Positions 2,330 to 60,400 of a stretch of DNA of 64,000 nucleotides are shown in pieces. Both the position numbers and the translations under genes were made by a program. The notes under the pieces are model-generated. The model searched no databases. It was not told the origin of the DNA and saw only the letters and a list, made by a program, of their open reading frames with translations. The first letter of the stretch is position 1. The number at the start of each line of letters is the position of its first letter. The stretch is from Cyanophora paradoxa CCMP329 (taxonomy: Eukaryota; Plantae; Glaucophyta): NCBI GenBank assembly GCA_004431415.1, contig QPMI01000477.1, positions 372,001-436,000 of the forward strand, written 5' to 3'.

Positions 2330-5082
2330 ATGTTCGGGCAGTCTTCGGGGGCGCCTGCGGGCGGCTTCTCGTTCGGACAGACGAACGCAGCACCGAAGCC
2401 GGCTGGCGGCCTCTTCGGCGCTCCTGCCGCGCCCGCAGCGGCTCCTGCAGGAGGCTTCTCCTTCGGGGCCGCCGCAACACCCGCACCAGGTGCGAATGAT
2501 CGTTCCGAACGCTCCCGCCGGCCCGTTCCCGGCCATTCGCGCCAGCCACCCAGAGCGAGCTAACGATCGCGCGGCACTCGTGCAGCCGCAGCAGCACCTA
2601 CGGGAGGATTCTCCTTCGGTGCAACGACCACGCCTGCGGCTGGCGCGGCCCCTGCGGCGACCTCGTTCTCGTTCGGCTCGACTGCCGCCGCGCCAGCAGC
2701 TCCCGCTGCGACCCCCACTCCAAGTTTCTCATTCGGCGGGGCGGCTACGCCGGCTCCGTCGGCGGCGCCAGCCACCGCCGCGAGCTTCCCGACTTTCGGT
2801 GCCACCACGACCACCACGACCGGCGGCGGGCTCTTCGGCAGCACAGCAGCGGCGAGCACGCCTGCAGCCCCTGCCTTCGGCGCTGCAACCACCCCCGCAG
2901 CGCCCGCTGCGCCCGCCTTCGGCGGGTTCGGGGCGGCGACGACTCCGGCGCCAGCAGCGGGGACCACCTCGCTGTTCGGCGCGACCGCCGCCGCCCCGGC
3001 CGCCGCGACGCCATCGTTCGGCGCGGCGCCCGCAGCTCCGGCCGCCGCCCCGCGACGGGCTTCGGCTTCGGCGCGGCCGCCGCCCCGCCGCCACGCCGGC
3101 GGCCCCGGCGGCCTCGCCGTCGCCGACGGGCTTCTCGTTCGGCTCCGCAGCGCCGGCCGCCTCTAGCACGCCGGCCGCAGCCGCGCCGGCCGCTCCTAGC
3201 TTCTCCTTCGGGGCGCCACCCCAGCGGCGAGCTCCTTTGGCGCGCCGGCGTCCACGCCAGCGGCGGCGGCCCCCGCCCCGGCGGCGACGGCGACACCCTC
3301 CTTCTCGTTCGGATCCAGCTCTACCCCGCCGCAGCGCCGGCAGCCGCCGCGCCGGCCGCCGCCGCCGCCGCGCCCGCAGCCACCCCGTCCTTCTCCTTTG
3401 GCAGCTCAGCCGCCCCTGCGGCGAGCAGCACGCCCGCCCCCGCCGCCCCCGCCACGCCCTCCTTCTCCTTCGGCTCATCCACCGCGACCCCCGCCGCCCC
3501 GCCGCCGCAGCGACGCCCGCCGCAGCGACGCCCGCCGCCGCCACGCCCGCCGCTGGGGGCTTCTCGTTCGGATCCTCCTCAACGCCCGCCGCTCCGGCCG
3601 CGGGCGCCGCTGCCGCCGCACCCGCCGCCAAGCCCGCGGCCGGCAGCTTCTCCTTCGGCGCGGCTGCGGCGACCCCGGCGGCGGCCGCCACTCCCGCGGC
3701 CGGCGCCCCGGCCGCCGGCGCGTCGGCGGCGCCCGCCGCGGCACCCGCTGCGACGCCCGCCGCGGGGTCCTTCTCGTTCGGCAGCACACCCGCCGCCCCG
3801 GCCGCGACCGCCGCGGGTGCCGCCGCGACTCCCGCCGCCACTCCCGCCGCCGGTGCGACGGGACGGCCGCGGCGCCGGCCGCGACCCCCACACTCTCCCT
3901 GTTCGGGGCGGGCGCGGGCGCCACAGGCGCAAGCACGCCCGCGGCCGGTGCGCACCGCGCGCCCAGCAACGCGACCGATCCGATCTGATGCGCCGCGTTG
4001 GCGCAGGCACTGCTGCGGCGCCGGCGGCCGGGACGGCGGCGGCGGGGGCGTTGGTCCCGGCTGCTGCCAAGGCGCCCGGTGCGCCGCGCCGCGCGGCTCG
4101 CGCCCCCCCGTCGGCGCCGCCGGGGCTCACTCACGGGCCGGGCCCGGGCAGACGCGGCGTCGGAGATCCGGAGCAAGACGGTGGAGGAGATGGTGAACAT
4201 GTGGGGCGCCGAGCTCGAGGAGCACGTAGCCGCCTTCGCGGCCTACGGCGGCGCCGTCGCCAAGTGGGACCGCCAGGCCCGCCCCGCCCGCCCCGCCCGC
4301 CCTCTCGTGCTCCGCCCCGCCCCGCCCTGACGAGGGGCGCAGCTGACGGAGAACGGGGGCCGCATCGTGGCGCTGCACAGCGAAGTGCAGCGGATCGCGG
4401 CCGCGCAGGAGGAGCTCGAGATGAACGTCAACACCATCGCCGCCCAGCAGGTCAGTCGGCCGCCGCCGCGGCACGGCTAGCCAGCCAGTCATCTAGTAGT
4501 CCAGTTACGGCCAGAGGAGAAGAGGAGGCCCCCCCTCTGACTCGTTCCCGGCCTCCAGAACGAGCTGGAGCTGCTGCTGAACGACGTGGAGGGCGAGGTG
4601 GGCAAGCTGGTCAAAGCGAACCCCGGCATGGCCGTCTCGGAGCGGGAGCAGACCTACCAGCTCGCCGAGGAGGTCGACCGCCAGCTCCTGGGCATGCAGG
4701 ACCGCCTACGCTCCATCATCGAGGAGATGAACCGGGGCCAGGAGCTCGCCGCCTCCCCCGAGAGCCCCGTGCGCCTCCCCCTCACTGACCTTCATTCGCG
4801 CCCCGCGCCCCCGCCCCTTCCTTACGCCGGGCCGGGTCGCAGATGGGCCAAATCGTGAAGATCCTGAACGCCCACCTGACCTCCCTCCAGTGGGTCGACG
4901 CCCAGTCCGTCGACCTCCGCAAGAAGATCGCCTCGGCCGAGGTGCCGTACCCCCCTCCCCCTCCTCTCGGGGCGCCCGTACCCCGCCCCGCCGGCCCCGC
5001 CGACCCGCGCCCGCCCGCCCCGCATGCGCAGGAGTCCGTGAAGAACAAGGCGGCGGACCTTGAGCGTTTGTATCGCCACTAG
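2330..5082 (+). CDS. NUP62: FG-repeat nucleoporin Nup62/Nsp1 (multi-exon; homopolymer frameshifts in the repeat region)
   Basis: MFGQSSGAPAGGFSFGQ followed by many FSFG/GLFG repeats, then an Nsp1_C coiled coil: SKTVEEMVNMWGAELEEHVAAF...VAKWDRQ/LTENG...EREQTYQLAEEVDRQL...QIVKILNAHLTSLQWVD. Confidence 0.93.
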
Positions 5083-17007: not shown

Positions 17008-17714
17008 CGTGGCGACTGAGCCTGCGCATGCTTCAGCTTTTTCAGCTAAAAGCTTTGACAACACCATGCATCATGCACAGCAGGCAGCTCACCAGGTCAG
17101 AGTCGAGCTTGCTCGAGCTCGGTCCTACGCTCAAGATCCTGGAGCTCCGAGCTGGCAAGTCCTCCGCGAGCGACCCTGAGGCGAGTCCGACAGTCCGACA
17201 GTCTGGGAGTCTGGGACGTGTTGTGGCGAGTCCGACGGTCTGGGACATGTACATGTAGAAGCAGGACCGACGTCAGCATCCGATGATCAGGGCATGTACG
17301 TGGCCGCGCGCGCGACGCACCGTACGCGTGGCGACAGGCGCTCCCGACCAGGCTGCTCTGCAGCTGACCCCCTCGAGCTCCGACAAGTCGATTACCAGGT
17401 CAAGCTTAAGGAGCACTAGTACTGTCTGCGGCCAGCTGCAGCACCACAGCAGTGCGCTCAGTGCGCTGGGCAGGCTATCCAGATCCGGGGGATCCTGAAT
17501 CCTGAATCCTGATACAGTACCGGTACCAGGCTACCAGCCGTAAGTTCCGCCCGTAACCAGCGCTCCGACATCGCCGAGCTCGAGTCGACTCGCTTCAAGC
17601 TCCGACTAGTACTCGAGCTCGATTACCAGGTCAAGGGTACAGTAAAGTTTACCAGACCTAGGGTACAGATGAGTTCATTTTTTTCATTCGAGGGCCTGTG
17701 GCGCGCTAGCGCTA

Positions 17715-17944
17715 CCGTGTAATACTTAATTACCGCGCTGACATAACTACTGCGCTACCATATTACTGCGCTCAAAATTTTTAGAACGCAGTAATTTGGT
17801 AGCGCAGTATTGCCCCCTTTGCTTACAAATAATGCGTTTTCGAGGCCGATGGAACGCAGTAATTTGGTAGCGCAGTAAAGCGCCTACCAGCGCAGAAAAT
17901 TTGGAACGCAGTAATTTGTGGCGCAGTAAATAAGTATTACACGG
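17715..17944. mobile_element. MITE (Tc1/mariner/pogo-type), 230 bp, TA target duplication
   Basis: TA|CCGTGTAATACTTAATTAC ... GTAAATAAGTATTACACGG|TA terminal inverted repeats, with internal repeats of gaacgcagtaatttggtagcgcagta. Confidence 0.85.
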
Positions 17945-18053
17945 TAGCTCTGTACGCCAGCATCTTGCTGCGCTCTTCTCCGCCGGCGCCGTCGTCAAAC
18001 ACGCCCCTCGAGTTCACAGCGTTCACGCATCCGCGGCGGCTCGTGCCGCAGAT

Positions 18054-19016
18054 ATGCGCTCAGCCGAGAAGCTCGTCGAGGTCGAGACCGTCCCCGCGCG
18101 CGCGCGGTCGTACGATGATCGTCCGCCCGGCCCCGGCGCCGGCCCGCGGCCGCGGCCGTCCCCGTCGAGATCTAGACGTCGACGGTCCGCGCCGCGCGCG
18201 CCGGCCGCGCTCCCCTCTCGCGATCGCTCCTGCACTGAGCTCGAGGGAGCGACGCCAGGTTTTCCGCGAGCTCGTGCCCTGCCCCGTCGAGGTCCGCCGG
18301 CGCCGGGCCGACGGGCGCGGCCGCTCTTTCAATTAATATTGCAACACGCCCGCGGCCGTCTGTCCGGCGCCTCTGCAGGTGCCCGCGCACACTGAATCGG
18401 TGAAGGTGCGCGAGAAGATCGCGGTGGTGCGCCAAGCCCGCCGTGCTTCCCGCGCGAGCGTACGCTGACGGGCCTCGGGCGGGCGCCGGCGCGCGCACGC
18501 AGGTGGACAGGCCCGTCGAGCAGCGCATCGAGGTCCAGGTCCCCATCGAAGTGCCGGCCCCCTACGAGGTCCCCCGCCCGCCCCGCCCCGCCCCGCTCCT
18601 TGCCGCGTTTCGCCCCGCCCCGGCGCGGCCGGCGCCGAGCAGCGGGGGGCGCAGGTCCGGGTGCCGTTCCGCGAGGAGGTGAACATCATCCGCGAGATCG
18701 AGAAGCCCGTGCCGTTCGAGGTCCCGCGGGATGTGCGCCCCGGCCCACCCCGCCCGCCCGCCCCCGCCTGCCTGGCGGCTCTCCGATGGCTCACGCCCCC
18801 TTTCAGGTCGGCGCGAGGTGCGGCTCCCGTACGAGGTGGTGAACCGCGTCGTGGAGCAGATCGTCGAGACGCGCGAGGTCGGGCCCGCCGCAGGCTCGGA
18901 GAAGGCCAGTGCCGCCGGGTGCTCACAGACCCGCGCAGGTGCCGGTCGAGAAGGTCGTGTTCCAGCTGCAGAACGTCGTCACTGAGAAGATCGTCGAGAA
19001 GCCCGTCCCCGTCGAG
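18054..19016 (+). CDS. Epiplastin/articulin/alveolin-like cortical protein (V/E/P/K repeat exons); may be a fragment or pseudogene
   Basis: Successive short exons VFRELVPCPVE, VDRPVEQRIEVQVPIEVPAPYE, VRVPFREEVNIIREIEKPVPFEVPRD, RREVRLPYEVVNRVVEQIVETRE and VPVEKVVFQLQNVVTEKIVEKPVPVE. There is an apparent in-frame TAG at about 18172 and no clear termini. Confidence 0.65.
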
Positions 19017-20057
19017 GCGAGCGAGCGCTCCCGCTACGCTACGCTCGGCTTTAGGTCTCCGGTCCCGCCCGCTCAGCTCTAGAACGCGCCCGTGGGCCGT
19101 GGTGCGCCAAAACCCTTCTCCAGGTGGCCGGAGAAGCCCTGCTGCGACCAGCCTCGGTCGCCTTTTTCAGGGCCCCCCGCCCCCGGCTCGGTCAGGGCTA
19201 CTCATGCATTGGCAAGGGCCGACTCGGCGAGATACCTTCCCTCGGCCGTCCAGATAACTTGCCTTGCCGCGACAGATTGCATTGCGGTTCGCGACGGAAT
19301 GAAGCGGAGCCCAGTACCCCCCGGGCTTGCTACGTCCCCCCCCCCTCCCCCCCTCTCCCTCCCCTTCCCCACGGCCCTTCGCGGGCCCCCTCCAACCCTC
19401 CGGCCTTCACAAATGTTTGCCGGAGTCTTCTCCCGGACCACGCCAACTGATGACGCAAGGCCCGTCGTAGGGGAGTTGGGGGGCAGCGGCCCCCCGCCGG
19501 GCCCCCGGGCTGGGCTCCGGATCCAGCCTAGTGGGCTTGGGCCTAGCCTAGTAGTATGCAAGATCGTCAAACCGATGATCGCGTCGGATGCATTCACTAA
19601 TTTACGTATACACGTATGAAGTACAAAGACACTGAGGTCGTCTCTCAACAGGGAGCTCAACACTCACTACCTTGCGGCTTTTCTAATTTAATTAGTACAT
19701 AACGCGCGGGGGTGCGCGCGGGTCTTATACTGAACATCGCAATTAAGCTGTATACAAAGAGATCAAGGTGGTCCTTGCTTCAAATCTGCAAAATTCGGAA
19801 ACCTGAGTGGGCTGAGAGCCCGCCTGCCGGAAACACGCTGAAAACAACTGCCTGGAACGGAAAGCTTACTATACAGCCAAAAGCTCAAGTGTCGAGTAGA
19901 GTAGTGTACAGGCGCACGGCCGTGGAGAAATCTAGTGTACAAGGCTCGACGATAGTATCGTTCTAGCCGAGGAAAGGAAAGGGGACAGCTATGGCACAGA
20001 AGACGAAAGGGCTTGAAGAAGGGTCCGGAAACGCGTAGAAGCTGCGGGGCTCATAAT

Positions 20058-21095
20058 CACCAGGACCAGAAGCGGAGCTGCATCTCGGTGGACTCCTCCG
20101 CCACCGTCTCGAGGAGTGTGCGTGCGGGGCGGCCGTCGCCGCAGCCGTCCCCGTCGCCGTCGTCGCCGTCCGGGCCCGGGCCGCGCCCGCCGGGCCGCCC
20201 GAGCCGCGGCCCGGGCGGTCGCTCAGGAGGCGGCGGGCGCGCTGGCGGGGGGGGAAGACGGCCCGCGCGGGGGCCGAGCCCGAGAGGAAGGCGCCGACGG
20301 GCTCCAGGGCGAGGGCCCGCGCGACCGCGAAGTCGGCGCGGGCGCGCCCGAAGAGCGTGATCGCCGCGCCGCTCTTGATGGCGGCTGCGCCCAGGACAGC
20401 CCAGAAGGCGTTGGCGGCCGGCTGGGAGAGGGCCGCGCTGGCAGCGAAGGCGGGCACGCCGGCTGCGCGCGCGCGCGCGCGGATCAGATCGCGCGATCGA
20501 ATTCTAGGACGGGACGAAGCGTCGCCGCACCGGCCAGGATGAGCTTGGCGAGAGCGGTCAGGGCGAACCGGAGGGTGGCGCAGAGCACGGCGGCGAATCC
20601 GACGGCCTCGCCGTTGAAGAACCAGCGGCCGCCAACGAACTGCATGAGCCGGCCGTCCCGGAACTGGATCCGGACCTCCCGGCCGGCCTCGCCGACGGGA
20701 ATGTGGCCGAGCGGGGAGAACTCAGGCGCTGCGGCGGCGGCCGCTGCGAGGGCGCCTTCGGCCTCCGCCGCCTCGTCGGCAGCGGCGTCGTCAGCCTCGG
20801 TCTGGTTGCTCGGAATGCCGGCGGTCACGGCGATGACCTGAGGGCACCGAACGAACGGCCGCGATGCTGCACGCGGTTCTGACAGCTTGCTGACGGGCCG
20901 GCGCCGAGCCATTGCGGCATTTTCTTTCTCTCCGATGTAGAACTTCCGCCGCGGCTGCGTAGTCGCCGCCGGCGCGGCGTGCGCCGGTCGCAGCCGCCGC
21001 CGGCCGATTGGTTCCGGCGGCACCAGAGAGCTCGGCAGCGCCGCGCGGCCTGCCGCCGGCAAGGAAGAGATGAAAGTCAGAATGCGGTCACTCAT
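20058..21095 (-). CDS. Hypothetical membrane protein with a putative organellar (plastid-type) transit peptide; 3' end uncertain
   Basis: MSDRILTFISSLPAA...RRKFYIG (S/A/R-rich with an early Phe), an acidic linker, GREVRIQFRDGRLMQFVGGRWFFNGEAV, then hydrophobic helices across a GT-AG intron at about 20463-20530. Confidence 0.45.
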
Positions 21096-21730
21096 CTTTC
21101 TGGCTTTGCAGCTGCTGAACCTGCCCCGCGCCAATGATGTCAGAAGTTGCAAGACGAGCGGTCTTTAGAGGGCGGCGCGCGGCGCTCAGCGGCAGGCGCG
21201 GAAACTAGCGGGGAGCGATGCTCTGCGCCTACTTCGACGCACCGCGCGGTCCTGGGCCCTTGGCCGCTCGGTTGTCAATGATGCCACCCCGCTTATGTAC
21301 CCCACAGAGCGCCGCGGCAATCGTACCCCGGCCCCGCTAAGCGGTGAGCTTTGAGCGCCCGGCCCGGCGGCCGCCATCGCCAATATTCAATGGGTGCACT
21401 GCGGCATGCGCGCAGTCAGATTTCTGAATTGTCTCTCACACGTGCACAAGGGACAACGCGCCCTAGGCCTTAGCGCACACGCGTACGCATGCGCCCTAGC
21501 TAAGGCCTTGGCGCACGGCTCCGCTGCTATAGCTAGCTAAAAACGACTCGAAGTCGGCGCTTTCGATCGCTATACGAAAACGGGTGCGAGATGCAGTTTC
21601 CATTTAGACATGTACAGCTACCTAAGATCTAGAGAACGATGCTGCTCCAACGATGCTATGCTAGAGCGCCCGGTGCGGGCACTGCGTGCGCCAACGAAAG
21701 GAAAGCTCGACCACACAATGCGTACTAAAT

Positions 21731-24700
21731 CTAAAGAGACTGCGAAGAGCGTTCAAAGCGGGGGCAGCGATTGCGAAAGACAGTTCGCCGCGCCGCGCTC
21801 AAAGCCTGTCTAGACTCGCGAGGGAAGACCACGGGAGGGAAGGGAAGAGGGGGGGGCGGGGGCGGGCGGCGCTCAGGCGCCGGCGGCGGCGAGGGCGGCG
21901 GCGACGCCGGCGCGGGGCGCGGGAGGGCGGCGAGGAGGCCGCGCAGGGCGACCAGCTCCGCCTCCGCCGCCGACTGCTCCCGCCGCGCCCCCGCCAGCGC
22001 CTCCCGCGCCGCCCCTCCGCCTCCTCGGCCGCCGCGCGGGCGGCGCGCAGGGCGGGCAGGGCCGCCGCCGCCGCCTCCCGCCGCGCCGCCGCCGCGACGG
22101 CCGCCGAGGAGAAAAGGCCGGGCAGGGCGGACAGGAGCTCGTCGCGGATGGCGGTGCAGGGCCCGCGGAGGGCCTCGGCGAGGGCGGCGCCGTCCACCAC
22201 GTGTCCCGCGACGTCGACGACCTCTGCCACGTCGCGGAGGCGCTGAGCCGCCTGCAGCTGCAGCGCCGGCCGCGTCCGCTCCTCGTGGCGCACGCGCGTC
22301 TCCTGCAGGGCCGGTTAGCGGCGAGAGGGGGGGCGCACGGAGCGCGGAGGGCGGCGTGAGCGCCGCACCGTGCGCGTGGTCTGCTCCTCCTGCAGGACCT
22401 GGACGGTCTCGACGACGGTGCGCTCGACGGGGACGGCGATCATGCCGGGGCCCGGCGCGCCGGCGCCGCCCTCGCCGCCGGACAGGGCGTCGGTGACGGC
22501 GCCGAGGCCGGCGAGGAAGGGGACGGCGGGCGGGAAGAGGAAGCCGGCGATGGGCGCGAGGACGGCGAAGGGGTTGAAGCCGCCGCCGCCGCGCGGCTGC
22601 GGCGCCGGCACGTGCTCCACGCCCATCACGCGGCGCTCGCGCTGCTCCTCGCCGATGTGGAACACTGCGGGGCGCGATCAGATCAGATCGGATCGGATCG
22701 GATCAGATCAGATCTGAGGGGCCGGGCGCCGCGTACCCGTGTGCGGGACCTCCTCCTGGTACGGGACGGGTACGAGGTAGGTCTCGGTGGTGGGGACGGC
22801 CGCCATGTAGTCCTCGGGACGCTGCACGACCTGCAGCTCCTGCCGCGCCGCCGGGCGCACGGCGGCAGCGCCGGGCACGGGCTGCAGGTCCCGGGCACGC
22901 CCGGCGAGCCAGCGGCGCGCCTCCGCCTCCGCGGCGCGCCCGACGGCCTCCTCGGCGGCCTTCGCCGCGGCCTCCGCGGCCTCGCGCGAAAGCAGCTCCA
23001 GCGAAGCCTCCGCGGAGGAGCCGGCAAGCTTTGCGAAGCGCGCGGCGGCGTTGCCGGCGAGCCGGGCCATGGCGCCCCTCAGGAAGCCCGAGGCGGCCTC
23101 GGCGGCGGCGCGGGCCGCGCGGGCCGCCTCGTCCTCCGAGGGCGGGGCCTGCCCCGGGCGCTCGGCGCGGTCGCGGAGGGCCCGAGAAGCGCGTCGACGG
23201 CCGCCTTCGCCGCGTCGAAGTCGGCGACGGTCTCCGCGCTGCCGAAGGCCCCGCGAGGAGCGCCGCGCGGGCGGCGAGCGCCTGCGCCGCGTCGCGGTGG
23301 CCGGCCAGCATCGCGCGGACGGCCTCGGTGGCCGCCTCCACGTGGACCTGGAGCGGGCCCGCGAGCTCCGGGTGGCGCGCCGCCTCCTCGAGCGCCCGAA
23401 GAACGTTCCACCCCAGAAGCTCCGCCCGGCCGCCGCCGCCGGGGACGGGACGGCGGCGGCGGTGGCCTCGGCCTCGCGGCCTGCGGGCGTGCAGGCGTCA
23501 GCCGGCGCCGCGGAGGGCGCGGCGGGGGCGCTCACCGCGCGCGACGGCCAGGGCCCGCTCCTTCTCGCCGGCGGCCGCCTCCGCCGCCGCCGCCTCGCCC
23601 GAGACCGCGTCGAAGAGCGCCTTCACGCCCTGCGCCGCCCGCGTCGGTCGGGGCGCAGGGGCGCCGCGCGCCGAGCCGCGCGCACCTCGGCGAGGGGCGC
23701 GAGGCCGGAGCGGAGGCGGCCGGCGGCGGCGTCGACGAGGAGCGCGCGGTTCTGCACCACCGTCGCCACCAGCCGCGCCTCCAGCGCCGGCAGGCCGCTC
23801 TGCGCCGCCCCGCAAGTCGGCCGCGCCGCCCGAGAACGAAAACCGAGGCCGAACCTCCATCAAAATGTGCTCGGCATAGGCGCGCAGCTCCGGCGCCTGG
23901 GTCTGCGCCCACTGCTCGCCGAACCGATCCGCAAACAGCTCGTCCTTCTCGTTGGCAGTCGCCTCGCCGGCGAGGAAGCGGCGGGCGAGCAGCGCCTTGC
24001 GCCCCGCCACGCACACCACCGCCCCCTCCGGCACCTCCACCTGCCCCCCGTCAGCCCCGCCCCGAACATGCGGCCCGGGCCCCCGGCGCCCCGCACCCCG
24101 GTCTCCGTGCGCAGCATCCGCACGACGCGCGCCGGCACGTCCGCCGGCTTGAGACCCCCCTCCTCCGCAGGGCGGTACTGGTCGATCTGCGCCCGCCGCG
24201 TGAGGCGGCGCCGCGGGCGCCGCGGGCGGGCCCCGCGCGCCTTGTTTACGACGACGACGATGCGGTCCGTGAGGTCGGGCCGCTCGCGCAGCAGATCCCC
24301 GAGCCTCCTGAACGCCTCCGCGTTGGCCAGGTCGGTGTACGAGAGCACGAACACCACGAAGTCGCTCCGCGCCCCCGCCCCCGCCGTCTCCCGCGCCAGG
24401 TGCCCCGCCCCGGCCTCCCCGACGCCTGCCGGCCCGCCCCGCGTCAGCAACGCCCGCCGAGCGCGCGGCCGCCGACCGCCCGCACCGGCGCAGTCGAGGA
24501 GCCGGAATCGCACGCCGGGCACCGCGGCGCTGCCCCGCGCCGCGAAGCCGATGCTCGCCTCCACGCGCAGCTCCATCTCTGCAGCCGGCGTCACGCCCGG
24601 GCCAAGCGGTGCCCCGAACGGCGCCCCGGCACGCGCACCGCGCATCTCCCTCGCCTTGGCGCCAGTTCGATCCTCGCGGGCATCCTCCGACATCTTCTTG

Positions 24701-25225
24701 AGACGCTTGTAGATCGGCCCGTCGCCCCTCTCGAGCTCGACGCGGGTCCCGCCTTGCAGGCCAGTCAGGACGGGCGGTCCCGCCCGCTCGACATGCTCCA
24801 CCGCCGTCGGAACCGCCGACTCCGACTGCGGCACCCTGCGAGCCTCGCGTTAGGCCTGGATCCCATGGCCCCTGGCGGCCCGAGAGCGCGGGCGTACGCG
24901 GGCAGAACGACGGAGCCGACGAAGGCGTTGCAGAGAGTCGACTTGCCGACGTTCGTCGCGCCCAGGAGGATGACCATCGCGAGGAGCAGCTCGCACGCAG
25001 CCTGCAGAGCAGGAACGTGCACGACCAGGGCACCGGCCAGTGCAGTCTTCGCGGCCGCCGCGAGCGGCCCGTTGCAGAGAAGCTCGACGCGCTTCCGACC
25101 GCCGCGCGGACCAAGCCAGGCCTTCACGGGGGCCACGACCTCCTCTGCGCAGCCTGTCATCCAGCGCGCAACAACAACGCGAGCAGCGCTACAAGAAGCG
25201 CACCAAGAGTCCGATTGTCCGCCAT
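21731..25225 (-). CDS. Bacterial-type dynamin-like GTPase (CrfC/YjdA/BDLP-like), copy A
   Basis: MADNRTL/EEVVAPVK...; G1 LLGATNVGKSTLCNAFVGSVVLP (24937-24963); G2 SAVPTAVEH; G3 LLDCA/G; G4 VVVNK/ID; then SGLPALEARL, helical stalk, V/E/T-rich hairpin with a hydrophobic tip and a coiled-coil return. The stop position is approximate because of homopolymer indels. Confidence 0.8.
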
Positions 25226-25842
25226 CTTGACTGCTAGATTGAAAGGGAGGGCATCAGACGCGGGCGGGCTGACCGCGCAAGCCGCGGGCGACGAACCGGA
25301 TCAAAAAGGCGCGAGTTCGGGCTGTGCGTATGCTGTGAGCGCTGTGCTACGCTGCGGCTGAAACGCAGACGCCTGGTCGAGGCGAAATGAGCTAGCTGGC
25401 CTTGCTCAAGAATGAGCTTTGTGAGGCGCGGAAGGAGCAAAAGAGCGCATGGAAGTTCGCGTGACATGGTCAGGGAACCAGGTCAGGTCGCCGGGTCGTT
25501 CGAACTCGAGGTTGCTTGACTCAGGCGATGTGTGTCTACGGTACCCCTCCAGGTCATGCAACCTCGAGTTCGAACGACCCGGCGACCTGACCTGGTTCCC
25601 TGACCATGTCACGCGAACTTCCATGCGCTCTTTTGCTCCTTCCGCGCCTCACAAAGCTCATTCTTGAGCAAGGCCAGCTAGCTCATTTCGCCTCGACCAG
25701 GCGTCTGCGTTTCAGCCGCAGCGTAGCACAGCGCTCACAGCATACGCACAGCCCGAACTCGCGCCTTTTTGATCCGGTTCGTCGCCCGCGGCTGGTCAGC
25801 CCGCCCGCGTCTGATTCCCTCCCTTTCAATCTAGCAGTCAAG

Positions 25843-28800
25843 ATGGCGGACAACCGGACTCTTGGTGTGCTTCTTTTAGCGCTGCTCGCGTTGTTGTTGC
25901 GCGCTAGATGACAGGCTGCGCAGAGGAGGTCGTGGCCCCCGTGAAGGACTGGCTTGGTCCGCGCGGCGGCCGGAAGCGCGTCGAGCTTCTCTGCAACGGG
26001 CCGCTCGCGGCGGCCGCGAAGACTGCACTGGCCGGTGCCCTGGTCGTGCACGTTCCTGCTCTGCAGGCTGCGTGCGAGCTGCTCCTCGCGATGGTCATCC
26101 TCCTGGGCGCGACGAACGTCGGCAAGTCGACCCTCTGCAACGCCTTCGTCGGCTCCGTCGTTCTGCCCGCGTACGCCCGCGCTCTCGGGCCGCCAGGGGC
26201 CATGGGATCCAGGCCTAAGTTGCCGCCTAACGCGAGGCTCGCAGGGTGCCGCAGTCGGAGTCGGCGGTTCCGACGGCGGTGGAGCATGTCGAGCGGGCGG
26301 GACCGCCCGTCCTGACTGGCCTGCAAGGCGGGACCCGCGTCGAGCTCGAGAGGGGCGACGGGCCGATCTACAAGCGTCTCAAGAAGATGTCGGAGGATGC
26401 CCGCGAGGATCGAACTGGCGCCAAGGCGAGGGAGATGCGCGGTGCGCGTGCCGGGGCGCCGTTCGGGGCACCGCTTGGCCCGGGCGTGACGCCGGCTGCA
26501 GAGATGGAGCTGCGCGTGGAGGCGAGCATCGGCTTCGCGGCGCGGGGCAGCGCCGCGGTGCCCGGCGTGCGATTCCGGCTCCTCGACTGCGCCGGTGCGG
26601 GCGGTCGGCGGCCGCGCGCTCGGCGGGCGTTGCTGACGCGGGGCGGGCCGGCAGGCGTCGGGAGGCCGGGCGGGGCACCTGGCGCGGGAGACGGCGGGGG
26701 CGGGGGCGCGGAGCGACTTCGTGGTGTTCGTGCTCTCGTACACGGACCTGGCGAACGCGGAGGCGTTCAGGAGGCTCGGGGATCTGCTGCGCGAGCGGCC
26801 CGACCTCACGGACCGCATCGTCGTCGTCGTAAACAAGGCGCGCGGGGCCCGCCCGCGGCGCCCGCGGCGCCGCCTCACGCGGCTGCCGCAGATCGACCAG
26901 CACCGCCCGGCGGAGGAGGGGGCTCTCAAGCCGGCGGACGTGCCGGCGCGCGTCGTGCGGATGCTGCGCACGGAGACCGGGGTGCGGGGCGCCGGGGGCC
27001 CGGGCCGCATGTTTGGGGCGGGGCTGACGGGCGGCAGGTGGAGGTGCCGGAGGGGGCGGTGGTGTGCGTGGCGGGGCGCAAGGCGCTGCTCGCCCGCCGC
27101 TTCCTCGCCGGCGAGGCGACTGCCGATGAGAAGGACGAGCTGTTCCGCAAGAAATTCGGCTTCCAGTGGCAGACCCTCGATGCCGCGAACCTTCGCGACT
27201 ACGCCGAGCAGGCTGTCGATGAGGTTCTGCCTCCACTTGCGTTCTCGGGCGGCGCGGCTGACGTGCGGGGCGGCGCAGAGCGGCCTGCCGGCGCTGGAGG
27301 CGCGTCTCGTGGCGACGGTGGTGCAGAACCGGGCCCTCCTCCTCGACGCCGCCGCCGGCCGCCTGCGCTCGGGCCTCACGCCCCTCGCCGAGGTGCGCGC
27401 GGCCCGGCGCGCGGCGCCCTTCCGCCCTCGACCGACGCCGGCGGCGCAGGGCGTGAAGGCGCTCTTCGATGCGGTCTCGGCGAGGCGGAGGCGGCGGAGG
27501 CGGCCGCCGGCGAGAAGGAGCGGGCCCTGGCCGTCGTGCGCGGTGAGCGCGCCCCGCCGCGCCCTCCGCGGCTCCGGCTGACGTCTGCACGCCCGCAGGC
27601 CGCGAGGCCGAGGCCACCGGCGCCGCCTCCGCCGCCGGGGACGCCGGGCGGCCGGGCGGCGGCGCTGCTTGGCTGGGAGCTGGTCCAGTCCCTCGGCCAG
27701 GCCGCCCGCCACGTCGACCTCGTCGGGCCGCTCCGGCAGCACGCGGCCGCCATCGCCGACGCGGCCGGGGCGCTCCTGTCCGGCGTGCCGGCCCAGCGCC
27801 GGAACGCCCGCTCGGCGCTGCTGGCGGCCCCCTTCGGTAGCGCGGAGGTCGTCGCCGACTTCGACGCGGCGGAGGCGGCGGTTGACTCGCAGCTCGACGA
27901 GCTCCGCGCGCGCGCCGAGACGCCGGGCCGCCCGGCGCCCACCGCCGACGAGGCCGAGCGCGCCGCCCGCGCGGCCGGCGAGGCGGCCGCCCGCTTCGCG
28001 CAGGGCGCCGCGGCCCGGCTCCTCTGCCGGGCCTCGGCCCGCCTCGGCGACCTCCTCGGCTCCTCGGCCCGCGCGGCTCTTCTGAAAGACGTACCCCACG
28101 TGGCAGAGGCCGCGGCGGCGGCCGTGACCGCCGCCGCGGCGCGCGCGGCAGAGGCCAACGCGCGGCGCTGGCTGGCCGAGCGCGGCGTTGCGCCTGCGTC
28201 GGGCGCGGGGGCGGTGCGCGCGACGTCGCGCCAGGAGACGGTCGTCGTGCAGCGCCCCGAGACCGTACCCGTCCCGCACCACGAGGAGATCACCGAGGAA
28301 GTGCCCGTCGTCCACGAGGAGCAGGTCCAAGTCGTCGGTGCGCCCTCAGCTTGGCGTTCCGATGCTCTGAGCCGGGCAAGGCTAGACGCTCACGCGCTCG
28401 CTCGGCGGCCGCGCCGCGCGCAGAGCAGCGGGCGACGATCGTCAAGCAGAAGGTCCAGGAGCAGGAGCCCATCGTCGAAGGCCGCTGCTTCGTGGGTGCG
28501 CGGAGCCTGCGCGCACAAAGCGCACTTGCGCGTCGCTCGACGCCCGCCCGTACGCAGTGGGCGGCCGGCGCTTCGGGCTCTTCGGCCCCAAGCCCAAGGA
28601 GTGGCGCAACGTGGTCGTGGGGTACCGCACCGTCGAGCGCGAGATCGACGTACCCACGGTCGAGAACGTCACGGTGACGAAGACGGTGCGGTACCCCGCT
28701 AAGCTGTCCCCCTTGGCCGGCCCTAAGCCACCCGCGCCGCAGGTGCCGCGCGTGCGGACGGAGGAGCGGACGCGGACGGTTGTGGTGGTGCGCGAGGAGC

Positions 28801-29315
28801 AGCGGATGCGCGACGCGGCGGAGACGGCGACGGTCGAGGGCCACGTCGTGGACGGCGCGGCGCTTGCGGCCGCCATGCGGCCCTCGATCCAGGCCGTCTG
28901 CGACGCCATCCTCGCCGAGGCCTCCGACCTCTTCTCGTCGGCGGCCGTCGCGGCGGCTGCGCGGCGCGAGGCGGCGGCGGCGGCCCTGCCCGCCTGCGCG
29001 CCGCCCGCGCGGCGGCGGAGGGGCGGAGGGGCGGCGCGGGAGGCGCTGGCGGGGGCGCGGCGGGAGCAGTCGGCGGCGGAGGCGGAGCTGGTCGCCCTGC
29101 GCGGCCTCCTCGCCGCCCTCCCGCGCCCCGCGCCGGCGTCGCCGCCGCCCTCGCCGCCGCCGGCGCCTGAGCGCCGCCCGCCCCCGCCCTCCCCTCTTCC
29201 CTTCCCTCCCGTAGTCTTCCCTTGCGAGTCTAGACAGGCTTTGAGCGCGGCGCGGCGCGGCGGCCTCTTTCGCATCCGCCGCCCCCGCTTCGAACGCTCT
29301 TCGCAGTCTCTGTAG
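25843..29315 (+). CDS. Bacterial-type dynamin-like GTPase (CrfC/YjdA/BDLP-like), copy B
   Basis: Same exon layout as copy A. G1 GATNVGKST at 26106-26132, DCA/G at about 26585, NK/ID split by a GC-AG intron at 26838. The stalk and tip are diverged from copy A. Confidence 0.8.
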
Positions 29316-29663
29316 ATCTAAGATTGTGTGGTCGAGCCTTCTTTTCGTTGGCGCCCGCAGTGCCCGCACGTGCGCCGGGCGCTCTTCGCAGTCTCTTTGG
29401 ATGTAGGACGCATTGTGCGGTCTAGCTAGGAGTGTTTATATCGCATTCGCAATCGCAGGTCCGCTTTCTCAGCTGCAGCCTGCAGCAGCAGATTTATTAG
29501 GCTCTCGTGTGCCCCCGGGCCGAGTTAAATATAAATATCATCGAGGCCTAGGGGTCAATCATAATCATGCATTTTGAATTCGAGCCGAGCTCGTGCACAC
29601 TAAAGAAACATACAACTTTTTCGCATTTCTTTTCGATACGCACTGCAAACACATTTTCATGTC

Positions 29664-34654: not shown

Positions 34655-39181
<4,527 letters not shown>

Positions 39182-50231: not shown

Positions 50232-50453
50232 CAGTAATTAATTATAATGCGTTTTTGGACCCCTATATGGATATTAATGCGGTACCGAATTAATGCGGTT
50301 TGAAGACTTTTGGCTGCTGTAAGGGGGTACATACAGCACTTTCTTAGCGTTTCGATATTAATGCGGTCCCAAATTAATGCGTTTTGACAGCGGAAAACGC
50401 ATTAATTTGGGACCGCATTACTTAAGTGCGCGCATTACTTAAGTGTTACACGG
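50232..50453. mobile_element. MITE remnant related to the 17.7 kb element (right TIR intact)
   Basis: Ends TAAGTGTTACACGG|TA and has internal inverted repeats attaatgcggtcccaaattaatgcg / cgcattaatttgggaccgcatta. A fragment of the same family lies at about 14783-14812. Confidence 0.6.
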
Positions 50454-50705
50454 TAGCGCTGCGCATGCGCACTGTCGACGTCACAGTGTGCGCAGCGCTA
50501 GCCGGCCGCGGCCCGGGCCCCCGGCGGCCCCGGCCCCGGGCGGCGGCGCCGGCGGCCGCGGGGCCGGGCGCCGGCGCCGGCGGCCCGGCCGCGGGCCCCG
50601 CCGCGGGCCGGCCGCGGGCCGCGCGCGGCCCGCGGGCCGGGCGCCTGCTCGGGAAACATTGGAAAAAACAAATTGGAAAGCTAGATCTCTCTCAGATCTT
50701 CATGT

Positions 50706-54485: not shown

Positions 54486-57400
54486 ATGCGGAGACGTCGA
54501 TACGAAGGAAGCGCGGAGCCGCGATGCACATGTACGCCATCATACGCGGAGCTAGCTGTGTCTATAGTCAGCCTTATCGCCATCATTTCACTTTGCGGGA
54601 ACTTCGCATGTGCTACGGGTGCGCCGCGCCCGCCTTGCGATCGGCCGCATTTACACGTTGCCCTATGATGCATATGCATACGTATATGTATACGGCGTGC
54701 GCAACGAGTCTCGCAGCTGATAATGGAGGTGTCTGGAGAGCCGAGGACCACGAGGCACACGCGCGCGTGGAGCCAGCGGGCGGAGCCTCCATGCGAAAGG
54801 TCCTGCAGCTGCAGGCCGAAGAAGGAAGCGATCCCTATTCTGAAAACCTCTGGGGCTCCCTCGCGCTGGAGCTCGGCCCGTCGGCGGCGCAGGCGGACGG
54901 CTCGTCGGCCCTCGAGTGCGAGCGGGCGTGGGCCCCCGCCGACAGCGCCCTCGACTGCACCTTCAGCCCGCGGCGCGGCAACGCTCCCATCGCCGTCGAG
55001 GCCGCCGCGTGCGCCGCCCGCCTCGCGCAGGCCCCAATGCAATCGATCGACGGGCTCCCGCGCGCAGGTTTGCGGTGCAGCTGACGAGCGGCGAGGCGAG
55101 CCGGACGGTGTTCCTGTCGGGGGCGAGCGCGTCGTCGTTCGCGTTCTCGGTGCCGGTGGCGGGCGTGCTCGGCCGGGCGCAGCTGCGCGCGTACCTCGCG
55201 GCGACGGGGCGCGTCGTGGGCCGCCCGCTCGACGTCGAGGCCGTCGGTGCAGAGCCGCCCTGCGTCACAGGTCAAAATTCATCCAAGTCATTGACGATGC
55301 ATATATGGGACCGCGCGCAGAGAGTCCAGACAGCACGTCGGAGCTCGACTGCGGGGCGCGGCTGCGAGCCCCGGCCAGCCGGTCCAATGCAGTGCGACCG
55401 CCCATCATGGCGTCTCGAATCCGGACCATGTGTTGCCAGAGTGCCGACACCGCGCCGCGCAGCGCTGTACCCGCGGTCGATGGGGCGGGCGGTCGCGGTC
55501 GAGTCGGAGCGCGTGCTGGTGAGCGGCGTGAACGGGACCGCGCAGCTGCAGCTGGCGGCGGGAGGCGCGGGCGCCAGCCTGGCGGGCGCTGGAGGCGTCG
55601 GGATCACATTAATATTCTGGCCGTCCACGGGGCCGAACTCAAACACGAGTGGCGGGGCGGTGCGGGCGTTCGTGGATCGGCGGCGCTGTACAGCGAGTTC
55701 GTCTTCTTCGGTACGCCTGACAGGCCCCGCCCTCCTTGCCGGATGGGATATAAGTTTGCGGCGCCGCGCGCGCGAATATTAATGCGATCCCTGACCGTTC
55801 TTCGCCTGTGCAGAGCTGAACATGTACGTGGCCGCGAAACCGAGCCCCGCCGCTGCGGGCAGCAACACAACGGCACCGCCGACGTCGGCGACGCCCTCGC
55901 CAGTCGTGCGCCCCTGATCGTTGCGGTCGGCGACTGTGCTCGCGCCCCCTCACTCGATTCGCAGCCGTCGCCGTCGCCCGCGGGAGCGCCGGCGCCCAGC
56001 GCCACGCCCGCGCACGTCCCCGTCCCACCGCCGACGCCTGCACCAGCTCCGTCGCCAGCTGTGAACGCCTCTGTGTGCCGGGGAAATGCTGCGACGAGCT
56101 TGCTTCGACATTGAGGGAAGCATGATGCGATTTCGCGCAGGCGTCTGCAGGGGGAGACGATGCATACGCCTACCCGGGCGATCTGTGGAGCATCCTCGCG
56201 CTGGAGCTCGGCCCGTCGGCGGCGCAGGCGGACGGCTCGTCGGCCCTCGAGTGCGAGCGGGCGTGGGCCCCCGCCGACGGCGCCCTCGACTGCACCTTCA
56301 GCCCGCGGCGCGGCAACGCTCCCATCGCCGTCGAGGCCGCCGCGTGAGCCGCCTCGCTTTCGCGCAGGCCGCCCTGCAGCCGATCGACGGCTCCCGCGCG
56401 CAGATTCGCGGTGCAGCTGACGAGCGGCGAGGCGAGCCGGACGGTGTTCCTGTCGGGGGCGAGCGCGTCGTCGTTCGCGTTCTCGGTGCCGGTGGCGGGC
56501 GTGCTCGGCCGGGCGCAGCTGCGCGCGTACCTCACGGCGACAGGGCGCGTCGTGGGCCGCCCGCTCGACGTCGAGGCCGTCGGTGCAAAGCCGCCATGCC
56601 TCACAGGCCGAGCGGCAGCCGAATCGTTGACGACGGGCCCGCGCGCAGAGAGTCCCGACAGCACGTCGGAGCTCGACTGCGGGGCGCGGCTGCGAGCCCC
56701 CGGCCAGCCGGTCCAATGCAGTGCGCTCGCCCATCTCGAAACCGAACCGTGCGTGGCCAGAGTGCCGACACCGCGCCGCGCAGCGCTGTACCCGCGGTCG
56801 ATGGGGCGGGCGGTCGCGGTCGAGTCGGAGCAGGTGCTGGTGAGCGGCGTGAACGGGACCGCGCAGCTGCAGCTGGCGGCGGGAGGCGCGGGCTCCAGCC
56901 TGACGGGCGCTGGAGGCGTCGGGATCACATTAATATTCTGGCCGTCCACGGGGCCGAACTCAAACACGAGTGGCGGGGCGGTGCGGGCGTTCGTGGGATC
57001 GGCGGCGCTGTACAGCGAGTTCGTCTTCTTCGGTACGTATACGCCCGTCAGGCGCCGCCCTCGTTGTTGGATGGGTGTTTTGCGGCGGGGCGCGCACGCG
57101 AATCCGTTCCCTCACCGTTTTGCCTGTGCAGAGATGAACATGTACATGACCGCGAAACCGAGCCCCGCCGCTGCGGGCAGCAACACAACGGCACCGCCGA
57201 CGTCGGCGACGCCCTCGCCAGTCGTGCGCCCCTGATCGTTGCGGTCGGCGACTGTGCTCGCGCCCCCTCACTCGATTCGCAGCCGTCGCCGTCGCCCGCG
57301 GGAGCGCCGGCGCCCAGCGCCACGCCCGCGCACGTCCCCGTCCCACCGCCGACGCCTGCACCAGCTCCGTCGCCAGCTGTGAACGCCTCTGTGTGCCGGG

Positions 57401-60400
57401 GAAATGCTGCGACGAGCTTGCTTCGACATTGAGGGAAGCATGATGCGATTTCGCGCAGGCTTCTGCAGGGGGAGACGATGCATACGCCTACCCGGGCGAT
57501 CTGTGGAGCATCCTCGCGCTGGCGCTCGGCCCGTCGGCGGCGCAGGCGGACGGCTCGTCGGCCCTCGAGTGCGAGCGGGCGTGGGCCCCCGCCGACGGCG
57601 CCCTCGACTGCACCTTCAGCCCGCGGCGCGGCAACGCTCCCATCGCCGTCGAGGCCGCCGCGTGAGCCGCCTCGCTTTCGCGCAGGCCGCCCTGCAGCCG
57701 ATCGACGGCTCCCGCGCGCAGATTCGCGGTGCAGCTGACGAGCGGCGAGGCGAGCCGGACGGTGTTCCTGTCGGGGCGAGCGCGTCGTCGTTCGCGTTCT
57801 CGGTGCCGGTGGCGGGCGTGCTCGGCCGGGCGCAGCTGCACGCGTACCTCACGGCGACAGGGCGCGTCGTGGGCCGCCCGCTCGACGTCGAGGCCGTCGG
57901 TGCAAAGCCGCCATGCCTCACAGGCCGAGCGGCAGCCGAATCATTGAACGATGGGCCCGCGCGCAGAGAGCCCGGACAGCACGTCGGAGCTCGACTGCGG
58001 GGCGCGGCTGCGAGCCCCGGCCGACCGGTCCAATGCAGTGCGCTCGCCCGTCTTGAAACCGAACCGTGCGTGGCCAGAGTGCCGACACCACGCCGCGCAG
58101 CGCTGTACCCGCGGTCGATGGGGCGGGCGGTCGCGGTCGAGTCGGAGCGCGTGCTGGTGAGTGGCGTGAACGGGACCGCGCAGCTGCAGCTGGCGGCGGG
58201 AGGCGCGGGCGCCAGCCTGGCGGGCGCTGGAGGCGTCGGATCACATTAATATTCTGGCCGTCCACGGGGCCGAACTCAAACACGAGTGGCGGGGCGGTGC
58301 GGGCGTTCGTGGGATCGGCGGCGCTGTACAGCGAGTTCGTCTTCTTCGGTACGTATACGCCCGTCAGGCGCCGCCCTCGTTGTTGGATGGGTGTTTTGCG
58401 GCGGGGCGCGCACGCGAATCCGTTCCCTCACCGTTCTTTGCCTGTGCAGAGATGAACATGTACATGACCGCGAAACCGAGCCCCGCCGCTGCGGGCAGCA
58501 ACACAACGGCACCGCCGACGTCGGCATCGCCCTCGCCAGTCGTGCGCCCCTGATCGTTGCGGTCGGCGACTGTGCTCGCGCCCCCTCACTCGATTCGCAG
58601 CCGTCGCCGTCGCCCGCGGGAGCGCCGGCGCCCAGCGCCACGCCCGCGCACGTCCCCGTCCCACCGCCGACGCCTGCACCAGCTCCGTCGCCAGCTGTGA
58701 ACGCCTCTGTGTGCCGGGGAAATGCTGCGACGAGCTTGCTTCGACATTGAGGGAAGCATGATGCGATTTCGCGCAGGCGTCTGCAGGGGGAGACGATGCA
58801 TACGCCTACCCGGGCGATCTGTGGAGCATCCTCGCGCTGGAGCTCGGCCCGTCGGCGGCGCAGGCGGACGGCACGTCGGCCCTCGAGTGCGAGCGGGCGT
58901 GGGCCCCCGCCGACGGCGCCCTCGACTGCACCTTCAGTCCGCGGCGCGGCAACGCTCCCATCGCCGTCGAGGCCGCCGCGTGCGCCGCCCGCCCTCGCGC
59001 AGGCCGCCCTGCAGTCAATTGACGGCTTCCCGCGCCCAGGTTCGCGGTGCAGCTGACGAGCGGCGAGGCGAGCCGGACGGTGTTCCTGTCGGGGGCGAGC
59101 GCGTCGTCGTTCGCGTTCTCGGTGCCGGTGGCGGGCGTGCTCGGCCGGGCGCAGCTGCGCGCGTACCTCGCGGCGACGGGGCGCGTCGTGGGCCGCTCGC
59201 TCGACGTCGAGACCGTCGGTGCGGAGCCGCCCTGCAGCTGCATCACAGACCAAATGACAGCCGAATCGTTGACGACGGGCCCGCGCGCAGAGAGTCCCGA
59301 CAGCACGTCGGAGCTCGACTGCGGGGCGCGGCTGCGAGCCCCCGGCCAGCCGGTCCAATGCAGTGCGCGCGCCCATCTCGAAACCGAACCGTGCGTGGCC
59401 AGAGTGCCGACACCACGCCGCGCAGCGCTGTACCCGCGGTCGATGGGGCGGGCGGTCGCGGTCGAGTCGGAGCAGGTGCTGGTGAGCGGCGTGAACGGGA
59501 CCGCGCAGCTGCAGCCGGCGGCGGGAGGCGCGGGCGCCAGCCTGACGGGCGCTGGAGGCGTCGGGATAACGTTCCGGCCAAGCAGCGCCGCGGGGGCGAA
59601 CGCGAGCGGCGGGGCGGTGCGGGCATTCGTGGGATCGGCGGCGCTGTACAGCGAGTTCGTCTTCTTCGGTATGTATACGCGCGTCAGGCCCCGCCATCCT
59701 GGCCATGGCCCATGGCCGGATGGGACTTAGTTTTGCGGCGGGGCGTGCTCGAATCCGATCTCTGACCGTTTTTCGCCTGTGCAGAGCTGAACATGTACAT
59801 GGCCGCGAAACCGAGCCCCGCCGCTGCGGGCAGCAACGCAACGGCGCCGTCGACGTCGGCAACGCCCTCGCCCTCGCCAAGCCAGCACCTAGCTACAGAG
59901 CCGTCGGCAACGGCAAGCCCGACCGCGTCCCCATCAAGCACAGCGCTAGCAAGCCCGTCGCCGTCGCCGAGCCTGCAGGCAGAGCTGTCGGCGACGGCAA
60001 GCCCGACCGCGTCTCCGTCGAGCACAGCGCTAGCAAGCCCGTCGCCGTCGCCGAGCCTGCAGCCAGAGCTGTCGGCGACGGCAAGCCCGACCGCGTCTCC
60101 GTCAGGCACAGCGAGCCCGTCGCCGTCGCCGAGCCTGCAGCCAGAGCCATCGGCGACGGCAAGCCCGACCGCGTCTCCATCGATCACAGCGCTAGCAAGC
60201 CCGCGGCCGTCGCCGTCGCCGAGCCTGCAGGCAGAGCTGTCGGCAACGGCAAGCCCGACCGCGTCTCCGTCGAGCACAGCGCTTGCAAGCCCGTCGCCGT
60301 CGCCGCGCCTGCAGCCAGAGCCATCGGCGACGGCAAGCCCGACCGCGTCTCCGTCGAGCACAGCGCTAGCAAGCCCGTCGCCGTCGCCGAGCCTGCAGCC

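Follow-up and report, generated by a model that had tools for sequence, protein, structure and literature searches.

We analyzed a 64,000-nucleotide window of the assembly of the glaucophyte alga Cyanophora paradoxa (contig QPMI01000477.1), in which two neighbouring genes, called A and B in the following, lie head to head and are predicted to encode dynamin-like GTPases of bacterial type.

Two outward-transcribed genes in an inverted duplication

Self-comparison of the window revealed a 7.7-kb inverted duplication at 21663–29385. Its arms, each 3.85 kb long (left arm 21663–25520, right arm 25553–29385), are separated by a non-repeated spacer of 32 nt at the palindrome centre (25521–25552). Inverted self-BLAST matches covered 22813–28261 at 88% identity and 21663–22315 versus 28730–29385 at 85%. 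The central arm sections (25280–25520 and 25553–25793) directly flank the spacer, which measures 42 nt in the strict sense owing to one mismatch near the centre. An earlier note on this DNA had described an inverted duplication of about 7.7 kb with a spacer of about 32–42 bp and two intron-containing genes transcribed outward from ATG codons at 25225 and 25843. Self-BLAST bore out the former, and both start codons are also the starts of the published gene models. Part of the 3′ flank (21704–21751) recurs once more in inverted orientation at 29380–29427, just past the end of the right arm.

Gene A (published as tig00020816_g14162; 21873–25225, minus strand) has 12 exons and 11 introns of 54–72 nt and encodes a hydrophobic hairpin tip, whereas gene B (tig00020816_g14163; 25843–29170, plus strand) has 13 exons and 12 introns and a basic-aromatic tip; both stop positions are probable. 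The introns follow the GT-AG rule save for one GC-AG, at positions common to both genes. We rejected the published 1192-residue model of gene A because it reads through frame breaks into the next gene. This neighbour, at 20063–21110 on the minus strand, is a separate two-exon gene with hydrophobic segments that the published model had wrongly fused to gene A.

From the centre outward, each arm begins with a promoter copy (A, 25226–25520, minus strand; B, 25553–25842, plus strand), the two being identical at 288 of 290 bases. Exons 2 to 7a encode the head, i.e., the N-terminal neck helices and the motifs G1–G4 (A, 23957–25144; B, 25924–27121); here the protein of A is 99% identical to B and 77% to a paralogue on another contig that served as outgroup. 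In introns 2–4, every aligned base matches between the arms, apart from a 12-nt indel in intron 2. The head is followed by an island of 34 residues, comprising two helices after a G5-like strand. In A (23855–23956) it is acidic and matches the outgroup; in B (27122–27223) it is 53% identical to A and carries basic substitutions, with the family core residues kept. Exon 10 encodes the diverged helical stalk together with the outgoing hairpin strand (A, 22737–23459; B, 27620–28337). The tip exon of A (22369–22664) encodes a hydrophobic hairpin flanked by proline and glycine, with a best 19-residue hydropathy of 1.89, which is conserved in the outgroup paralogue. The tip exons of B (28424–28685), split by an extra intron at 28496–28557, encode a short basic-aromatic loop and no hydrophobic segment. 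Finally, a C-terminal return helix and 3′ flank are again closely matched between the arms (A, 21786–22064; B, 28981–29257).

Divergence between the arms changes stepwise from the centre outward: 0.4%, 1.9%, 0 of 510 bases, 2.3%, 27% (over about 100 bases), 6%, 26% (stalk), 22%, 1.3% (C-terminus) and 8% (3′ flank). Only two indels of more than one base occur in the closely matched centre, namely 12 nt inserted into intron 2 of B (26208–26219) and a 5-nt promoter indel (25275–25279). The earlier note had called promoter and G domain near-identical, introns included. This holds for the promoter and introns 2–4, but not for the whole G domain, as the island in the second half of exon 7 had been missed. 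The same note had judged the stalks diverged but alignable, the tips unrelated and the extreme C-termini near-identical, all of which we found again: the stalk DNA differs by 26%, stalk and hairpin proteins are 56% identical, the tip exons align no better than chance (z −0.4) and the C-terminal tract differs by 1.3%.

Arm-to-arm conversion has overwritten heads but not stalks

As outgroup for a conversion test on protein sites we used a single sequence, the third, A-type paralogue tig00001027_g6400. Among informative residues of the head, A and B agreed at 67, A and the outgroup at 2, and B and the outgroup at 1, with a synonymous divergence (dS) between the arms of 0.02. In stalk and hairpin, by contrast, the corresponding counts were 22, 59 and 18, with a dS of 0.59 and a nonsynonymous divergence (dN) of 0.39; the contrast between head and stalk is significant (Fisher p 2e-20). 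Since the stalk of A is nearer to the outgroup and the head of A nearer to B, the A/B split must, on these sites, predate the split between A and the outgroup, and the heads must have been overwritten later. A single recent duplication was therefore rejected, as the tracts also differ in age. Tracts differing by 0%, 2%, 6% and 1% point to several conversion events. We conclude from the alignments that repeated partial conversion must have overwritten the promoter, the neck and the C-terminal return helix, together with most of the G domain; stalk, tip and the 34-residue patch of the G domain have, by the same comparison, never been converted. The proposal of the earlier note that conversion keeps the G domains matched is thereby supported for the head.

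The island has a dS of 0.65 and is thus as old as the stalk, with flanking tracts that are 94–98% identical. At its variable positions, A is acidic and B basic, and both keep the family core residues. We infer that its persistence reflects selection against conversion. With the outgroup tip, that of A shares 55% identity and a similar hydropathy (1.89 in A, 2.05 in the outgroup). Because of this identity to an A-type paralogue and a stalk dN/dS below 1, we read the tips as two stable types and not as a hypervariable cassette. The notion that the target-contacting part diversifies is weak in this light, and comparison of dN and dS between the arms led us to reject positive selection on the stalk.

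A and B belong to a CrfC-related branch of bacterial-type dynamins

Profile alignment with hhalign matched the algal proteins to CrfC with E 4e-9 and 33% identity over 181 columns covering G1–G4, and the best tblastn hits in plasmids were crfC. A genome scan yielded 34 bacterial loci; it was seeded with an alignment that contained CrfC, and the set is thus biased towards this family. With a profile of these 34 relatives, the three algal proteins scored 82–98 bits, over a length of about 370 residues. The NCBIfam CrfC model gave 17–29 bits against a cut-off of 1146, and the match to Dynamin_N, spanning 1–167, lies below the Pfam cut-off. In a tree, the algal proteins fell outside a 16-row CrfC clade (support 99/98) on a long branch, and therefore no donor can be named; we rejected any named donor, cyanobacterial or other, as the tree is unresolved. 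Searches of limited reach, i.e., a plain word index and representative databases, found only Cyanophora's own copies, and phages, viral contigs and PDB sequences gave nothing beyond generic P-loops. A metagenome scan returned two weak matches, of which the one inspected was a generic bacterial dynamin.

Both arms have intact G1, G3 and G4 motifs (GxxxxGKS, DxxG and NKxD), and it is only in the published model of B that a frame break removes G3. At G2, all three algal copies have a serine at the offset from the P-loop lysine where CrfC has a threonine. In RdcA, this catalytic G2 threonine is T103 (PMC6510439).

We modelled the outgroup paralogue tig00001027_g6400 only, with AlphaFold and the bacterial rows as alignment; a fold computed from three sequences was poor. 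The model had a mean predicted local distance difference test (pLDDT) score of 63.5, with the G domain mostly at 70–93. In it, the G domain sits on a neck of N- and C-terminal helices, followed by a helical stalk. Beyond the stalk lies a hairpin whose two strands, of about 35 residues each, would by our estimate span about 12 nm, and the chain comes back through a long return helix. The best Foldseek matches (E about 1e-8) were Cj-DLP1 at the top, SynDLP, BDLP1 and mitofusins, with Z scores of 21.4 to MFN2, 19.8 to SynDLP and 17.4 to BDLP1. The hydrophobic hairpin of A and the basic-aromatic loop of B fall at the end of the predicted β-hairpin, the putative membrane-contact site, where pLDDT is under 40. 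Bacterial relatives apparently have a shorter hairpin at the same place. The N-termini of A and B did not differ with respect to a targeting peptide, and no transit peptide was evident.

Alignments and model together support the assignment of both genes as bacterial-type dynamin-like GTPases, related to CrfC/YjdA and with a predicted BDLP/mitofusin-like fold. The earlier note had suggested bacterial-type dynamin genes, which is borne out by hhalign, the bacterial profile and the outgroup model; the dynamin-like fold (Z 21) was found in a model run on the third paralogue. Membership in MidX or Mx was rejected, both being core dynamin-related proteins, as the nearest relatives here are of CrfC type.

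CrfC/YjdA (RdcA) is thus the closest sequence family, with the G1–G4 region and the helices after G4 aligning with the algal proteins. In this family, too, what looks like a short hairpin with an aromatic tip ends just before the same return motif. Unlike CrfC/YjdA, the algal genes are eukaryotic and intron-rich, come as two paralogues instead of one and have a longer hairpin and the serine at G2, and their proteins lie on the long branch outside the core clade. Our literature searches brought up no description of CrfC-related dynamins in any eukaryote, Cyanophora included.

The bacterial relatives sit with genes for YjcZ and patatin, not with a second dynamin. In Bacillota, Pseudomonadota and Cyanobacteria, we observed that a CrfC-like dynamin gene shares an operon with a gene for a patatin phospholipase and, usually, one for YjcZ/RdcB, with eight loci outside enterobacteria; in the dynamin-patatin loci (L002, L004, L006, L014, L015, L016, L024 and L029), the match lies at about position 4000 and the genes lie downstream. 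Enterobacterial core CrfC copies are without patatin. The dynamin-YjcZ-patatin operon has been called a putative phage defence (PMC12922286), and it looks like a widespread defence system. Profiles of YjcZ/RdcB and patatin found no match in the six frames of the window, where short exons limit sensitivity.

Comparison with paired dynamins, Mx proteins and palindromes

Two neighbouring dynamin-like genes of the same fold class are known from Campylobacter DLP1/DLP2, LeoABC/Eleos and Bacillus DynA (PMC6104087, PMC4159319). These heterotypic bacterial pairs are, however, co-oriented or fused and have distinct G domains, and the Campylobacter pair has a dedicated linker and assembly domain, whereas the Cyanophora genes diverge from a palindrome centre and have heads made 99% identical by conversion. 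PADLOC models of LeoA and LeoBC matched weakly (E 1e-2 to 3e-6), at a generic G-domain level. CrfC has been named as the exception to heterotypic pairing of bacterial dynamin-like proteins (DLPs) (Liu 2018, PMC6104087). The analogy to DLP1/DLP2 drawn in the earlier note is hence weak and would amount to convergence at most. Because the CrfC relatives sit with YjcZ and patatin and not with a second dynamin, the pair was most likely made in the alga; inheritance from a bacterial DLP operon was rejected on the same grounds.

The mammalian MxA/MxB genes are likewise neighbouring paralogues of the dynamin family. Conversion between them has recurred only in the BSE-GTPase part, with tracts that reach into introns, and the specificity parts stay distinct (PMC4687636). 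Unlike the Cyanophora genes, they encode eukaryotic-type dynamins with proven antiviral activity and show positive selection; the Cyanophora pair is of bacterial type, palindromic and more completely homogenised, including the promoter. Moreover, co-located dynamin-like pairs, i.e., Eleos homologues, have been reported in 317 eukaryotic genomes (10.1101/2022.12.12.520048). In view of these pairs and of the head-restricted conversion in MxA/MxB, the earlier statement that no example had been described was too strong.

Arm-to-arm conversion is standard for palindromes (10.1101/800185, PMC8600007). Palindromes of sex chromosomes resemble the Cyanophora locus in their inverted arms, spacer and conversion of coding and non-coding DNA alike. 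Their arms, however, exceed 10 kb and are more than 99% identical throughout, whereas in Cyanophora arms of 3.85 kb flank a 32-bp spacer and conversion is discontinuous around regions that have diverged in function.

Other features of the window

A gene at 34655–38440 (plus strand) reads as methionine aminopeptidase 1 by its motifs, although a Pfam scan of one exon had no hit; those exons that were inspected show no frame breaks. Short exons at 18060–19020 (plus strand) encode a repeat protein rich in valine, glutamate and proline, which we take to be articulin-like and which resembles the dynamin hairpin strands in composition. Four tandem units of about 1318 nt each, 87–99% alike, occupy 54848–59872. 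They are followed at 59860–61410 by an array of 78–90-nt repeats with an open frame for a protein rich in serine, proline, threonine and alanine, like a cell-surface glycoprotein. Two AT-richer segments with internal inverted repeats (17703–17951 and 50359–50464), 74% alike mutually, are possibly small non-autonomous transposons.

Discussion

The assembly interrupts the reading frames at about 14 places, some five in A and nine in B. Each of these breaks is one base short in a run of G or C, at a local GC content of 79–92%. As a control, the Nup62/Nsp1 gene (2331–5082, plus strand) contains about six like breaks in a single 1.4-kb exon of phenylalanine-glycine (FG) repeats with 80% GC. Nup62/Nsp1 is a gene that a eukaryote needs. 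As it has the same kind of breaks in the same window, those in A and B are probably PacBio errors, and both genes are very probably intact. The assembly was built from PacBio RSII reads with Quiver and Illumina correction, and uncovered areas were filled from PacBio (PMC6704402). That one or both copies are recent pseudogenes with real frame breaks would fit the number of breaks, two or three of which lie at the same place in both arms, and the absence of both gene ids from the genome-paper supplements searched. The uniform nature of the breaks and the control gene nevertheless make this very improbable, and the in-frame segments of A and B contain no nonsense codons and have dN below dS; the canonical introns at common positions likewise speak for intact genes. 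The palindrome as such could stem from a long-read fold-back or from polishing, given its very short spacer, the tracts of 100% identity and a majority-rule Illumina correction that could smooth near-identical copies (PMC6704402). We consider this hardly credible. The arms differ in a codon-structured manner, with type-specific exons and an extra intron, and thus are not a read fold-back, which we rejected; polishing, in turn, is unable to raise heads expected to be less than 80% alike to 99%.

The sequence comparisons show that, long ago, duplication of a CrfC-related gene of the Cyanophora lineage gave rise to A, with a greasy tip, and B, with a basic-aromatic tip, in head-to-head orientation. 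As an inverted repeat with a tiny spacer, the copies recombine and have undergone repeated partial conversion. We propose that such conversion would be accepted wherever A and B can replace each other and opposed by selection wherever their functions diverge. The identical promoters would probably lead to co-expression of A and B, and identical G-dimer surfaces would allow mixed A:B G-domain dimers and co-polymers. A would then anchor in the bilayer through its hydrophobic tip, and B, from the end of the modelled hairpin, would contact a second surface or anionic lipid. That such mixed polymers form and tether or seal membranes in this way is a tentative suggestion that we rate slightly below evens. 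The likeliest setting, at about even odds, is defence or membrane damage rather than housekeeping. Defence is suggested by the dynamin-YjcZ-patatin operons of the bacterial relatives; further points are that the family appeared lineage-restricted in our searches and that the conversion pattern is like that of MxA/MxB. We came upon no study of antiviral defence in glaucophytes in a limited literature search. Taken as a whole, we regard the proposal as the best explanation, held with somewhat more reserve than confidence. A stricter version is unlikely, in which an obligate A:B polymer was rebuilt from a single-component CrfC-type defence GTPase and acts in an inducible, membrane-targeting innate defence, with conversion keeping the G-dimer surfaces compatible and selection protecting patch, stalk and tip.

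Several points weigh against the proposal of mixed, membrane-bridging polymers. CrfC is described as soluble and as an exception to DLP pairing (PMC6510439, PMC6104087), and no counterpart of the N-terminal linker or assembly domain of Cj-DLP1/2 was seen in A or B. With the threonine at G2 replaced by serine in all three copies, GTP hydrolysis may be weak. The predicted structure is that of the outgroup paralogue alone; its distal stalk is of low confidence, and its tip has a pLDDT under 40. Furthermore, no positive selection was found, dN/dS being 0.66–0.74 and below 1 wherever measured, and the island could persist simply because high divergence alone blocks conversion.

As the main rival reading, A and B might be intact but act separately, like MxA and MxB, each forming its own polymers on different membranes or targets, so that head identity would be a tolerated by-product of the inverted repeat and mixed oligomers incidental. 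We find this doubtful but worth serious consideration: CrfC homo-oligomerises and is without a dynamin partner, an A-type copy exists on another contig, a model of tolerated conversion explains the same pattern (PMC4687636) and the unconverted island could even help A and B to avoid each other. Yet with identical promoters and nearly identical G-dimer surfaces, A and B would be difficult to keep apart, and the N-termini give no hint of different targeting. A role in housekeeping or in membrane upkeep under abiotic stress, e.g., at an outer plastid envelope without DRP5B, appears quite unlikely. Such a role would suit the BDLP/mitofusin-type fold, and the outer-envelope division machinery of Cyanophora is not known (Price 2019, PMC6704402). 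However, relatives were not found in other glaucophytes or algae within the limited reach of our searches, a multi-copy, lineage-restricted family would be unusual for core machinery, and no transit peptide is evident.

Irrespective of the function of A and B, the locus is well supported as a real evolutionary mosaic in an undescribed algal branch of bacterial-type dynamins. Each of its ingredients has precedent, and the surprise is therefore moderate. The locus represents a natural domain-swap experiment, in which one engine is combined with two stalks and tips. Which tracts were converted and which were not indicates the residues that set A and B apart, including the 34-residue patch in the G domain. 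The locus offers a clean test of whether conversion is tolerated or selected, a point that the work on MxA/MxB did not settle, and a test of whether hetero-pairing of dynamins can re-arise from a single-component ancestor.

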